NCBI GenBank assembly: GCA_963924565.1
Contig: OZ004607.1
Span: forward strand, 27,094,001-27,158,000
Origin: Ascidiella aspersa
Taxonomy: Eukaryota
DNA: 64,000 bases
Reading direction: 5' to 3'
The notes below the pieces were generated by a model, which worked only from the letters and a program-made list of their open reading frames with translations, did not search any database and was not told where the DNA came from. The first letter of the stretch is position 1, and every line of letters begins with the position of its first letter. This document shows, in pieces, positions 57,101-63,100 of this stretch. Position numbers and translations under genes: made by a program.

Positions 57101-60100
57101 ACCCACCTTCATGTCCTCGAGGTCGAGTCCGGTGGCCCACATGAGGTAGAGGATCGACATCTCCTGGTGGTCGCTGCGACGACGGAAGCGAACCGCAGAA
57201 GCTTTGCGCTCTTCCGACCGCGCCGTTGGTTCGAGGCGTGCGCGCGACTTGGAGCGAGGTTTCTTGGTGTCCTTCGATTCGCGCCGCAGCTTGACGCGTT
57301 CCGCAGCGGACGCCTTTGTAGGAACGAAGAAAGAGGAAGTTTTATTATGTGATTTGGTAATTGGTTTTTATCAACGAGAAATTGTGCAAAGCAGCTTGTA
57401 ATCTGGATGAGATGACGTGCGTATTTGACGACAGATTTTGTACAATAAGAAAGCAATTTAAAAAAGTTTACCGAAGACTGTGTTAGGCGTACGAGCTAGA
57501 AAACAGGATAAGTCGTAAGTTAGCCTAGAAGTCGTAAAAGCTTATTCAAATATTTTGTTATTATACTTTTAACTAAATTTTGTTTGTGGTAGAAGTGCAT
57601 TCCAAATCAAATATAGGTGACACGTTATTTTAGAGTTTGTAAACTAAATGCCAAAAAAAGAAACACCAAAGTATCGCAACGAAGTTCAAAAACTGCCCAA
57701 AATTTAATTTTATGTGTTATCTATAACTAAAAATTAAACGATAGTTTTGCTATACAGGGTTCTGTTTAAATTTTTCGTTCCCTAAAACTCCTATCACAAA
57801 AAGGTGCAGTGTACTGACAAAATGAAGCCCAAAAAGAGCTTAGGACTGGTCGCCATACAGAAATTCCTGAAACTTAAAGGTAGCTTGGTGGTACATAACA
57901 AGAATAATTTTTAAGCATAAGGTAACTTTTCCAGGTGATTGCGCTAAAAGTAGCTTTGGTGTCAGAAATAATTTAGTTCCCTCAAGTATTTAACCTATTT
58001 TTTTTTATTAAATTCACGTTTCAAGATAAAAATTTCTGCGTTTAATCACAAATCATTGCTGAAATTCCGATAACAATTCGGTATCGAAGCGGCACTGATA
58101 TCGGACGAACACTGACACTTCCACTTAGCATTGGGTATCCGCTCCGCTCCGATATTATGGGGCATCGCTACTACCAACGAAAATGTTCGACTTAAAAACC
58201 ATGTCCTTAAACAAGTTTTCGCCAATCTGGTCCATTGTTATTGCTTTTATACTTACGGAGGAAATGTCGGCATTTGAGAAGTCCGACCAAGGTGTGACGT
58301 CGGTGTCAAACATCGAAGTCAAATGTGGATCTTTAGAAAAAAAAATCTTTTAAAACAGCCACTAAGAACAGTTTAGTTTTTGTTTGTGTTTTAAAGAAAC
58401 GAACATATCAGGCGATATGTTATATAATTAAAAAAAAAAGATTATAAACAAATAATACTAGAATCAATAAAATTGGTAGAAATGAGTCTTACCTGGTGGC
58501 ACCTGCGCTATCAGCGAAGAAGGTGGATAGCTGAAAATAAACAAAAGTTTTAGCTTCAAAGCACGCTTAAAATAAAAAAACGTGCAAGTTAAAAATGTTT
58601 AATAATGAAAGTAACATAAAACAAAACACATTTTTTAAGGTCAGTATTTTTTTAGAAGAAAACAAATAAAAGAAAAAAAATGTTTGTTTGGTGGCAATAT
58701 AACAGAACCTTATGTCACTGTTCATAAAGCGACGTATAGATTTTTTTAACTGAAAGAAAGTAAATGTAAAAGAAGTGTAAAGGTGTAGTGGCGTATTCTT
58801 CCCATTGACCAAAAAGCAGGTTGGGAATGCCTGAAGTATATTGTTCTGTATTGTTCGAGCCCAGTCCTCAGGACAACCATTCTCCCAAAGGGAAACGGTG
58901 TCGCTACTTGGAGGTAGGGCTAGAGTTGAACTGCGCATCGGCAGAAGGTTAACATTTTTATCTTTTTGGACAAGTGTTAGTATTAGTATTTATACTGGCC
59001 AAAAAAACCCGGTTTTACCCGGGAAAAAATGCCAGGACACAAATCCCACAGTGATCCGGTTAAAGACCCCCGTCAGGTAAGTAGTTAAGCGACGTATAGA
59101 CTTGTTCTCACCAATACGAATGCTCATCGGCGATACACTCAGCGTCGGACATTTGGACTTGCTTCCGGTCGTCGCTAGGCAACAGCCGGAAGTAGCAGTG
59201 TTCCTCGGCAATGTCCAACACGCGTTGGCGCTCTTGAGCAGTGAAGCGAGGTCGCAGCGGAATGGCAGGCTGAAATAAGAGAGATAAGCGATAACTGACA
59301 AGCAATCAGTCGGGCCCAAGTATAGGACTATACCTACATATAAGATTAGGTAACTTTTAGGTTATATACATAATGAGCAAATGGTTGATACCGGCCAGCA
59401 CTGTTATTTTACTGCTTTAAACTATAAACCAGTGTCTATGAACCTAGGTTCGCCGGTTAGTTTAGTTGGGTCGCTGACTGCGGTAGTTTACACGGTTTAA
59501 TTTATAGAGATCTGTTCTGAGCAAGATTTCTTTAAAATTTAAGAAGAAATCGCTTGTATATAAAATTCGAAATTATTTACGCTGTTTGGTTTAAATTTTG
59601 TTCGCTTGTTTAGAGTTCAGCGAAAAGAATTGGGCACCAAGGCTTCGTTGTTATGTTAATTTTTAACACATAAAGTAGTATACAGCTAGCTGCGGAAAAA
59701 AGTTTAAGAAACAACGGTTTATAAAAAGTTTTATTTATTCGTTGGCAATAAAATGCAATTTAGCTTAACAAATATTGAAAAAAATCAATGAATACCTCTT
59801 GCAAGTGCACGGACTTCACATCGTTCTTCCTCTGCTTCTTGTCCGTCTTGCGCGGCGAAGGCGACAAGGGCGGGAGCGGAGGTTGGGACTGCTTGATGGA
59901 GAGGAGTGCCTCCACCGCTTCCAGCTCTTCGCTACCGGACTTCCGGGAGTCCTCCGCCGATCCGGGAAGCCTCAAGCTTCCGGGAGTGGCGGGAACCGGC
60001 TGGCCGCTGTTGTTGAGAAGCTGGACGGCTTCCGACGCCGAGCTGGCCCGCCGGGGCACTAGGGGCGTGACGGGGGGAGAAAACACCCGGTCGCCACTGG

Positions 60101-63100
60101 CACCAAGATGGCCGCCGGGGGTCGGGGGGTGCGTCGGCTGCTCGCTGGACTCAGAACTTTCCGATAACCTGAGGCGAGAGGGAAAATGAAAGAAGATCTA
60201 GGCATCGTCAAAATCGCCAAAGAAGGAGATCTAGGCCAGTGTTTCTTAAACAGGTGAATGGTTCACCCCAGGTTGAATAAATTTTTTACAGGGGTGAACC
60301 AACCAAAAGGGGTTGATAAGGGTGAACCGTCAAAAATGAATGATGGATCTGCAGTAAATCGACCACTGAACTGTTGATTTTTTGGTGTTTTGGTTTTGCT
60401 AATTGTAATAGTGAAGTTGGTGTTCGCAGTGTATAACTACGAAAATATGGTGACTGTGTTTTATGCTTTTGCAGCTTTACATTTCTGGACTCCAGAAATT
60501 GTAGATTTGCAATGGTAAAACTTAGCTTAGTCTTAACAAAAATCGAGTCATTTTGTTCTGTTATATATAGACGAGTTTCAAGGGTGAATGAAATCTGGAG
60601 ATAGATGCTAGGGGTGAACGAAACTAAAACAGTTTAAGAAGCACTGATCTAGGCTATCGTCAAAGTGTGGCAGTGAGCTTTTACGCGTGCAGTATCTTTT
60701 GATTTGTTAAGGACAATTTATAAAGAAGTCACGGCTAAGGGTCAGCGCACTAAGTAGCCTGCGTTTGAAGCATTTATTCAAGTAGTTATAACTGCCTATC
60801 TTTGAACCCTCGTACCTTGTTTACCGTGCGCAGCCAACCAGCGTGCTAAAGTTAAGTTTTCCATTAAAAGTATACAGAGTACAAATTTAAATTTTGTCAA
60901 AACCTGAAAATTATGCCATGCCTATACCAACAAGTAAAAAAAAGGTTAATCGACTATTCGATGTGCAAATGCATGGTATTTCTCATTCGGCTATCTAAAT
61001 CAACTACGCGTATTAATTATATCTCGTGCGGGTAGATCTCGCAAAAAACGTGATAAAAATATAAAAAAAACGTTGCTATTTATACAGAATCAAGCTATTG
61101 AATAAAGCTGCGGTGTCAAATCCAACAGCTTACAACAGGGCCAATTAAGCCGTACCTCGTAGCTGACGAATGTCTCCTTTCTGGTGTCGACTTCATGTCG
61201 GTGAGCACCTCCAAGGCTGCTTTTTCCTTGTCGCTCATGGCAGAAATTTCGTCGTCCGACCTCAGACGACCAGAGACCTGCGTAAAACGTATGCTTCCAA
61301 ATTAGCTCCGAGAAACTCATGAAATCCAAAATGGTTGACAAAAATAAGATATAACCCCAAGATAATCATGGTTAGTGTAAACTATTTAGTGTAAACCAAA
61401 ACCTCATGACTTGGCTAACCAAAATTTTAAATAAAATTGCAATCACTATACTAAACGTATAAAAACGTTTGGTCAATCGTGTGGGAAAATATTCTTTTTT
61501 ACGTTAACTATCAATTCTGTTCAGATAACTTGTAAAAGTGCAAAACAAACAACACAAGTAGCAAGTTGTAGTAAGAATATCAAAGCCGATACAAATAGTG
61601 ACTATAAAATAAATAAAGATATACGAAACGTTCAAAATGAACTATAGGGTTCGATATTTTTACTACGTATTTACGACGAACCTTTATACTCAAAAACTTA
61701 GCAAGTTGTCTCATTTTAAAGACAAGGGCTTATCGCAATAAAAAATAGTAAATTAAATATCGAGTTGTCGACCCGCGTGACAACTGTATACCGGCGTTCT
61801 ACTGCAAACATACCTCGGCAATTAAAGACAGGTTCCTCGTTTCCTCCTTTGACAAAGCCCTGTATCTCTTCTTTGGGTGGACGTGCTTTAAATTTTGTGG
61901 GGTTAGGTCGGCCCCAACAGGAGCAGACGGGGGTAGCAGCGGTGAGGTTAACTTGGGGGATAGCATGTCTGCCTTTGTAACACTGTCATAACAAAATAAA
62001 TAGCGAATAAAATCGTTGCATTAGGTGCTAAAACATAATAACATAGTTTTTAAAAGATACATTTTTTTGTTGACAACGTATAATGTAATTAACTCACTTT
62101 TCATCACTCTTTGCTTCGCCCAGCAACAAGTTTTTATCCCCTTCCGATTTAATTCTTTTCTTTAGAGGTTGAACCAACTCGTCACTGTCTTTTTCCGATG
62201 GTCGTTTTACGGCACGCGATTGTTCGTCCGGTTTTTCAGACTTCGCCTGATCCTTCGTTGGTACGGCATCCTCCTGTAAAATTGAATGAAAAATCAAAAG
62301 AGGGGCCCCCAAATATTTTTAACGCACTGAAGACGGAATAAGCACTTGACGAAACGTATGCAAATAAAAAAATGAATCTTTTATCATTTATTTGGGACGC
62401 TCTTTTTCTACTGAAGATTATGAACAGATCCGTGTTTAGTGTTTCCAAAAATAAAAACATAAAAAATATCACTATCAAATAGTAATCTCGCATTGCTTAC
62501 CCTATCTGTTTCTTCCAGATCTGAGTCTCGTTGAGCGTCGCTTTCATCATCTTCATCTTCAGATGCTTCCTCATCTTCATCCTCAGAGCTGGAAGAAGCC
62601 GATGAGCTGAACACGTCATCCACATCGAGCGGAACTGAAAATATTTCCATCATTTATACAAGATAACAAGGTATATAAACCTATTAAAATGGCACTAACT
62701 GAGTTGAATCAAACCCAGTATTAGGTCAGTGGTTTTCAACCGGGCTGCCATTTCTTATGTCCAAGTTTGCTGAGAGATATTTGAGAATATTTAAGAATCT
62801 GATTTGTGCTCACTCTTACAATTTTGGATACGATTAGAGTGGAATAAATCCATTTATAACTTCCTACGTTGTGTAGAGTTGGTGTGTTGCTCAAGTTCCG
62901 TTTTTCGTGACATTTAGTGATTTAGGTACGGAAAAATCTTGTAGGGGTGCCTCAATCTATTTATTATTTCTGAGGGGTGCGGCAAGACATAAAAAAGTTT
63001 GAGAACCACTGCACTAGGGCCTTACTGCTTATTTCCTGGTGGTTAACTGTTCACTAATCACTCACCTCTTGATTTCTTGTCTTCTTCATCTTCCGAAGAA

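Follow-up and report, generated by a model that had tools for sequence, protein, structure and literature searches.

A U1-headed family of short retroposons in Ascidiella aspersa, very probably an independently evolved counterpart of the crocodilian SINEU elements

Background

Short interspersed elements (SINEs) that carry part of a small nuclear RNA (snRNA) at their 5' end are known from crocodilians, in which the SINEU elements are retroposons with a 5' end derived from U1 or U2 (Kojima 2015, PMC4494074). SINEU elements have poly(A) tails, contain internal oligo-T that excludes RNA polymerase III (Pol III), and have no recognisable promoter, and SINEU-1 is without a long interspersed element (LINE) that shares its 3' end. 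They are families and not sums of independent chimeras, they prefer a Mariner element as target and are tied to the Tx1-Mar LINEs, and in SINEU-2 the U1 pieces were added repeatedly, with varying junctions; no SINEU was found outside crocodilians (PMC4494074). Here we discuss an insert in a stretch of 64,000 nucleotides of the Ascidiella aspersa genome (assembly GCA_963924565.1, contig OZ004607.1, positions 27,094,001 to 27,158,000), which we call the window and within which positions are counted from its first letter. An original prediction, made from the letters of the window, took this insert for a U1-headed retroposon inside a SETD1 intron, and gave a new U1-headed SINE family as one of its possible sources.

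With regard to other systems that need to be compared, snRNA retropseudogenes and template-switch chimeras of snRNA with L1 or Alu were reported by Buzdin 2002 and Garcia-Perez 2007, as far as these are covered in PMC4494074, and SVA and Sadhu are non-autonomous retroposons that RNA polymerase II (Pol II) transcribes and that have no promoter of their own (PMC4494074). The ENE is a stem-loop with a U-rich internal loop by G-C pairs that clamps poly(A) in a triple helix, and is present in KSHV PAN RNA, in MALAT1, and in transposon RNAs of plants, fungi, slime mould and stickleback retroviruses (PMC7583470). The ENE motif of Evade/Copia93 of Arabidopsis raises both RNA stability and mobility (PMC12501189). 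In the literature that we searched there is no described snRNA-headed family from an invertebrate, the nearest being an automatic 'SINE_U' label in a Daphnia paper, nor is an ENE described in a SINE or in an animal retroposon of the type without long terminal repeats (non-LTR).

Results and discussion

The insert and the family to which it belongs

The insert proves to be one copy of a dispersed family, the full-length members of which start with the same piece of U1. It comprises 346 bases (59086-58741, minus strand) between two copies of TCTATACGTCGCTT, and the insert, the perfect 14-bp direct repeat and the minus-strand A7 described in the original prediction are all present. Its parts, in the 5' to 3' order of the element, are as follows.

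59087-59100, minus strand: 5' target-site duplication (TSD), TCTATACGTCGCTT; the identical 14-mer recurs at 58727-58740, and a TSD finder gave the same pair
59084-59086, minus strand: AAC between the duplication and the element, occupying the place of U1 nucleotide 1 (A)
59051-59083, minus strand: U1-derived head, which reads TACTTACCTGACGGGGGTCTTTAACCGGATCAC and corresponds to U1 nt 2-35, one nucleotide being deleted after nt 28
59038-59083, minus strand: predicted 5' hairpin, folded with U1-derived bases pairing mutually and with the non-U1 bases that follow
58995-59035, minus strand: second hairpin, CTGGC-A-T6-CCCGGG-TAAAA-CCGGG-T7-GGCCAG, with an internal-loop fold; candidate ENE-like poly(A) clamp
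58748-58994, minus strand: AT-rich linker, body and tail of the element, from alignments with other copies
58741-58747, minus strand: A7 tail, read directly
58727-58740, minus strand: 3' TSD, TCTATACGTCGCTT, a 14/14 match to the 5' copy

The AAC at 59084-59086 looks like an untemplated or mutated 5' end. The window copy is without about 45 nt of AT-rich linker that other copies have, is 10.5% from the family consensus, and falls into a smaller, older subfamily; we are confident, short of certainty, that it is a dead and fairly old copy of a non-autonomous retroposon family.

The family itself was found by searching the whole 308.6-Mb assembly with the insert. A first look brought up 293 candidates, and 45 matches, spread over many contigs, were scored; the majority of these 45 begin at query position 4, which is the start of the U1 sequence. 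A 30-nt motif that spans the U1/non-U1 junction is present at 85 places in the genome with up to 3 mismatches (reversed control 0), a 24-nt motif from the body at 192 and a 31-nt motif from the tail at 51, and the copies are spread over all nine large contigs. We aligned 22, 30 and then 40 further loci, and found the flanks to be unrelated on both sides and the junction and deletion to be common to all. The exact start is ATACTTACCTG in about half of the full-length copies. Clean duplications could be defined for 22 copies and are 9-17 bp long (median 14), with 16 of the 22 beginning with A. The A tails are pure and up to about 30 long in the least diverged copies and degenerate in the older ones, and 5' truncation is frequent. 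Divergence from the consensus, which is 376 nt plus the A tail, ranges from 4 to 20%, the youngest copies being 96-98% alike, and there are at least two subfamilies. We put the size of the family at about 200-300 copies in this 308-Mb genome of a marine invertebrate.

Searching the genome for head and body separately had been proposed as the way to recognise a SINE family, and it did reveal many copies with a common head-body junction and different TSDs. At least 85 copies agree in junction and deletion, lie between unrelated flanks and have A tails and duplications of their own, and so the reading of the insert as a member of a new U1-headed SINE family holds good. As one U1/body junction and one 1-nt deletion are present in all copies, the head was acquired once and then inherited. 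The dispersal, the 9-17-bp duplications, the A tails and the 5' truncation are hallmarks of target-primed reverse transcription by a LINE enzyme. Four loci (L058, L059, L067 and L068) were considered as carriers of alternative bodies, but their similarity to the family is lost after nt 99-126 and they have nothing in common thereafter, and we take them to be disrupted copies. Two metagenome scans with the head and body motifs were blank.

Some individual copies have arrangements that should be recorded. Two of them, at 33.097 and 33.107 Mb of contig C5 (G000:C5; L094 and L095), are 9.6 kb apart and have identical flanks, and so represent a segmental duplication rather than two insertions. At L050 (G000:C3:36178828-36179300) a full-length copy is followed, directly after its A tail, by a 5'-truncated copy that starts from nt 12, apparently a tandem insertion or one nested in the tail. 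At L093 (G000:C5:31061078-31061777) nt 1-185 are followed directly by A10 and a 13-bp duplication, as if the RNA had ended there or been primed internally.

The head and the U1 genes of the species

The generic Rfam U1 model scored the head at only 9.7 bits (E 8.6), the cut-off being 69.5 bits. At the Rfam gathering threshold the whole window has no match, and at E up to 10 it has chance-level matches and the 9.7-bit U1 match, and nothing else. A better comparison is with the U1 genes of the genome itself, which form a tandem array on contig C5 (42 matches of 144 bits each with Rfam U1) with a unit of 1193 bp that holds U1, U2 and U6. Taking one of these genes as reference (L031:1501-1665, 144 bits), we found the window head to be identical at 27 of 27 bases, followed by a 1-nt deletion and then GATCAC, and the family consensus to agree at 34 of 35 positions, counted from U1 nucleotide 1. 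Identity over a 27-mer within 64 kb cannot be due to chance. The bases of the head include some that are lineage-specific, for which the Rfam model gives no credit. Of the two comparisons that had been proposed, that with the Rfam model gave almost nothing and that with the species' own U1 gave 27 identical bases and GATCAC; the original prediction was to be abandoned if the head did not align with the species' U1 past its first 10-mer, and it aligns well beyond that.

It had also been said that the similarity decays after about 35 nt, and this is borne out: past nt 35 the best local match, to the 3' hairpin of U1, is no better than those of 361 of 500 shuffles. As the similarity there is weak and shuffle-like, we set the U1-derived part at nt 1-35. 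The shuffle test also leaves unsupported a 'deleted mini-U1' as source of the remaining head. The first 35 nt of the family thus come from the U1 snRNA of this lineage, starting at nucleotide 1.

Comparison with SINEU and other retroposons

The family resembles SINEU in having an snRNA-derived head, in being short and non-coding, in its poly(A) tail, its internal T runs and its lack of a promoter, and in propagating as a family; like SINEU-1, it has a 3' end that was not met with in any LINE checked here. It differs in that it keeps only 35 nt of U1, starts exactly at U1 nt 1, has a fixed junction with no repeated 5' additions, has no target preference, and carries an extra hairpin with a U-rich loop. 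We infer that its origin was independent of SINEU from the match of the head to the invertebrate's own U1. It is therefore in our opinion very probable, as judged from sequence, that the Ascidiella family is a SINEU-like, snRNA-headed SINE that evolved independently.

In common with the snRNA retropseudogenes and chimeras, the family has LINE-mediated copying of snRNA sequence, duplications and A tails. However the retropseudogenes and chimeras are independent events with variable junctions and usually include a whole or 3'-truncated snRNA, whereas here one junction has been inherited by a propagating family. SVA and Sadhu are similar in that they rely on the enzymes of LINEs and on promoters that lie outside them or are unknown, but are longer and have no small-RNA head.

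Folding of the head

The head of a young copy (L064) is predicted to fold at -36.1 kcal/mol (z -4.7), and none of 200 shuffles folds as well; for the window copy the values are -31.5 kcal/mol and z -2.2. In both folds the U1-derived nt 11-20 pair with nt 27-36, and GAUCAC is then in a stem and not in a loop. The bases of U1 that recognise 5' splice sites are predicted to be partly paired with the G-rich stretch that follows. The original prediction had pointed to GAUCAC as the loop that binds U1-70K, which does not fit the predicted stem, and to ATTTGTG as identical to the Sm site of U1; the heptamer is indeed at 59044-59038, but it is private to the window copy, the family consensus being GTTTGTG. 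With GAUCAC in a predicted stem and ATTTGTG specific to one copy, the suggestions of a U1-70K loop and an Sm site are unsupported. The head would then no longer behave as U1, but would form a closed 5' hairpin and then a hairpin with U-rich internal loops.

The second of these hairpins had been recognised as a CTGGC/CCCGG...CCGGG/GCCAG pairing and is present at 59035-58995. In the family it lies at about nt 49-93. Its lower stem has 5 bp and is rich in GC; above this both strands have a U run, the two making up an internal loop, and then come an upper stem of 3-5 bp and a 6-nt loop. In an alignment of 64 copies 94% of the cells of the lower stem are paired, and at one of its pairs 49 copies have G-C and 9 have C-G. 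None of 500 shuffles reached the observed pairing, the count of double changes or the covariation score, and sliding the partner strand reduced pairing from 85.6% to at most 45.5%. The nine C-G copies are probably related, and the switch between G-C and C-G should thus be counted as about one evolutionary event. RNAalifold gave no structure for 44 heads, which we attribute to the gappy alignment of decayed copies, and for this reason the named structure and counts of pairs were used instead. The 5' hairpin gains from a G-to-T change at nt 18, which was considered as compensatory, yet this change is mixed among the youngest copies and we make no claim for it.

It is possible, though we regard it as doubtful, that the second hairpin is of the ENE type and clamps the poly(A) tail of its own RNA in a U-A-U triple helix. 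The predicted fold does have a U-rich internal loop on both strands, with the U runs (median 7 and 7) unpaired, and every complete DNA copy ends in an A tail. In this fold the hairpin is like the known ENEs in its U-rich tracts on both sides of the internal loop and in being part of an A-tailed element, and to some extent in the G-C pairs near the tracts. It is unlike them in its position, which is near the 5' end of the element and some 290 nt away from the tail, and in its short upper stem and A/G mismatch. The details of the last two points weaken the ENE reading: the upper stem has only 3-5 bp, the C-G pair on the upper side is adjacent to the U tracts in only about half of the copies, and on the lower side an A/G mismatch stands between the U tracts and the C-G pair. 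If the clamp does form, it would stabilise the Pol II-made RNA of a promoter-poor retroposon and would favour its reverse transcription.

The same structures bear on the proposal that the source was a functional variant snRNA gene, or several, for a shortened U1-like RNA of about 95 nt with an Sm-type site and a terminal hairpin, which left retro-copies. The 5' U1 sequence, the hairpins and the U-rich stretches of the head are what such an RNA would have, and divergence is slightly lower in the head than in the body, a difference that is biased by the choice of copies. Nevertheless we find this very improbable. The head scores 9.7 bits where Rfam asks for 69.5 of a U1 gene, and no promoter core or other snRNA promoter lies upstream of the copies; the Sm-like heptamer is absent from the consensus; the covarying lower stem encloses the U runs in an internal loop and leaves no free Sm site; and the copies extend over another 280 nt, end in an A tail and have duplications.

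The host intron

The intron that contains the window copy was confirmed by RNA reads of the same species, from a stranded run.

58531-59111, minus strand: host intron, GT..AG; four RNA reads, each with a different start, connect 59112 with 58530

On the minus strand the exon ends in ...TATTG, the intron starts with GTGAGAACAAG and TCTATACGTCGCTT (59100-59087) then follows. The element is in sense orientation, starts 11 nt after the donor and is wholly within the 581-nt intron, which was about 221 nt long before the insertion. A SET domain is encoded on the minus strand (E 1e-14), together with a weak match to N-SET (22.2 bits at E 1.6e-4, where Pfam sets its cut-off at 28.3 bits), and with these and the read-confirmed intron the placing of the insert in a SETD1 intron is supported. 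CAG/GTAAGTA at 59074-59083 had been named as a possible donor of a plus-strand transcript; no read joint uses it, and it is the minus-strand intron that is spliced. The window copy is removed with the intron, and splicing is normal with no visible harm.

It is thus hard to see in the insert a cis-acting 'U1 decoy' or splicing regulator of the SETD1 intron, placed or exapted 11 nt past the donor. The 5' end of the element RNA can pair with 5' splice sites, and it adjoins a donor in sense orientation. However the insert is an ordinary member of a dispersed family, and this family has no preference for insertion close to donors, GTRAGT being as rare upstream of its copies (1 of 80 flanks) as in controls. 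Furthermore the intron is spliced at its annotated donor, and the predicted fold has the U1-like bases paired with others of the element. We give this proposal as little weight as that of a variant snRNA.

The head is covered by RNA reads of sense orientation only, with 10 sense and 0 antisense reads at 59044 (run X8, 59044-59069), and 4 of 8 of the head reads carry a 1-nt deletion in the G run, compared with 2 of 271 DNA reads. One or a few particular copies are thus expressed, probably within host transcripts. The reads have the look of transcription of the head, but as they stem largely from few copies we draw no conclusion from them.

Other repeats were seen in the window. Positions 60193-60300 are the edge of a very high-copy repeat, with a DNA depth of about 600-fold per strand compared with 2-5 in unique flanks, and this repeat is also abundant in RNA reads of both strands. 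At positions 59374-59607 and 57970-58203 the depth is somewhat raised and the DNA reads and contigs have variant letters; these stretches are likely to be other low-copy repeats in introns of the SETD1-like gene.

Transcription and source of the element

T runs near nt 56-62 and 80-87, which are T7 and T8 in the consensus and have a median length of 7 and 7, are present in essentially all copies. RNA polymerase III would stop at such runs, and their conservation leads us to suggest Pol II, and not Pol III, for the element RNA. The consensus has no tRNA-like part (ARAGORN), and in the absence of a tRNA or an Rfam match, and with the internal T7 and T8 runs, a classical Pol III SINE with a tRNA, 7SL or 5S head was rejected.

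The duplications abut nucleotide 1 (or 2), and no upstream sequence is common to any two independent copies. Since the duplications abut that base and no copy has an extra shared 5' flank, the 5' end of the source RNA was presumably at U1 +1. For U1 we take the promoter core to be CAAAGAGT, at about -55, from our own comparison of U1 and U6. Searched for as an exact 8-mer 35-55 nt before a U1 start, it is present at 46 places in the genome, all within the array. Upstream of 45 full-length copies there is no promoter-like motif and no shared sequence. A master copy behind a U1 promoter was therefore not found, either by the genome-wide search for the core or among the 45 copies.

The array does contain a fusion of the kind that might have given rise to such a master. 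At L074:2472-2502 (contig C5, about 29.572 Mb) U1 nt 1-28, behind an intact U1 promoter, pass straight into 3' sequence of a LINE that targets U2; the LINE is truncated and the rest of the array unit is deleted. By its sequence this is a ready-made chimeric gene driven by a U1 promoter, and would be a precedent for such a fusion. Another array unit, at G000:C5:29596444-29596509, has the promoter core and the start of U1 and no match to U1 nt 17-43, and may be another chimera or the edge of the array; neither the head nor the tail motif has a place there, nor has the body motif among the matches listed (100 of 192).

The U2-targeting LINE is about 8.1 kb long, is inserted in the U2 genes of the array and has a 3' end without poly(A). 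It was considered as donor of the tail and rejected, having no similarity to the family beyond the U1 bases and no poly(A). The comparison of the tail with LINE 3' ends, which had been proposed with the prediction, was extended to 12 otherwise unassigned places of the tail motif: 11 proved to be on family bodies and one (L124) gave no match at E below 1e-3. Neither these 12 places nor the U2-targeting LINE gave a LINE partner.

The LINE in the U2 genes is nevertheless the basis of another proposal, in which a retrotransposon with snRNA genes as its target gave rise to the insert by read-through or 5' transduction, carrying a piece of U1 along. The LINE of about 8.1 kb sits in the U1-U2-U6 array, and a truncated copy of it is joined to U1 nt 1-28. 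However it shares nothing with the family other than the U1 bases, its 3' end lacks poly(A), the family insertions are dispersed without a common target, and no family copy is in the array (the head and tail searches being complete, and that for the body covering the matches listed). As there is no copy in the snRNA array, and the only site-specific LINE there targets U2 and is unrelated beyond the U1 bases, we exclude read-through, and rate its chances a little below those of the variant snRNA and the decoy. Lowest of all, and in effect negligible, are those of a single template-switch chimera of U1 with a LINE or mRNA at this locus only: U1/LINE chimeras and plain U1 retropseudogenes do occur in this genome, but it is excluded by the copy number and the fixed junction, with 85 copies that have identical junction and deletion, 192 with the body, subfamilies, and no LINE with the body or tail among the U2-targeting LINE and 12 tail places checked.

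Insertion sites of the family have no common sequence and there is no target preference. A LINE that primes on poly(A) and has no site specificity is suggested as the copying enzyme by the A tails, by the length of the duplications and by their weak tendency to begin with A. Outside the array there are 13 dispersed U1 copies (L127-L139), some full-length and some ending near nt 87-103, and several of them (L127, L129, L132, L133, L137 and L139 are examples of the dispersed copies) have A tails and duplications of 11-15 bp, which indicates that U1 RNA itself has been retroposed in this genome. A fragment of the SINE beside the U1 pseudogene L138 was considered as a chimera, and is only a neighbour.

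Several points weigh against the interpretation of the family as an snRNA-headed SINE propagated from a U1-type start. No transcript start, polymerase or master locus was observed; the promoter search depends on a core of our own definition, matched exactly; and no LINE partner was found among the U2-targeting LINE and the 12 tail places. The family RNA reads are few, many of them from few copies. The copy count is modest, and body-only copies were inspected only in part. U1 similarity past nt 35 is not significant. Finally, no read or contig that skips 58741-59086 was seen in DNA run X7, which is from a different individual as judged by fixed single-nucleotide differences, or in contig sets X1 and X4, the X1 contigs spanning both insert junctions; as no empty site was seen, mobility rests on evidence at the level of the family.

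We suggest the following course of events for the SINEU-like family. In the simplest origin a U1 promoter and the first 35 or so nt of U1 would have been fused to foreign sequence, and one or a few master loci would supply the element RNA. This RNA, made by Pol II, would begin with ATACTTACC, continue past the T runs and have poly(A) at its 3' end, and would be copied by a poly(A)-priming, non-site-specific LINE, which would also be the maker of the U1 retropseudogenes of this genome.

Conclusions

For SINEs headed by snRNA there had been one description, that of the crocodilian families. An independent family in an invertebrate would show that the design arises repeatedly, and with its sharp 5' end at U1 +1, its recent copies and its small copy number it offers a cleaner system in which to look for the master locus and the polymerase. 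The same genome holds the raw materials for making such elements, in the form of a LINE-invaded U1-U2-U6 tandem array, a U1 promoter with U1 nt 1-28 and LINE sequence fused behind it, and retropseudogenes of U1. For the host, an antisense full-length insertion brings with it a perfect consensus donor, CAG/GTAAGTAT, and could thus feed exonisation or U1 binding in introns.

If the second hairpin is indeed ENE-like, poly(A)-clamping RNA structures would extend to animal retroposons, and this would be the first case of such a clamp both for SINE-like elements and for non-LTR retroposons of invertebrates. It would also explain why snRNA-headed SINEs tolerate, and in this family conserve, long T runs.

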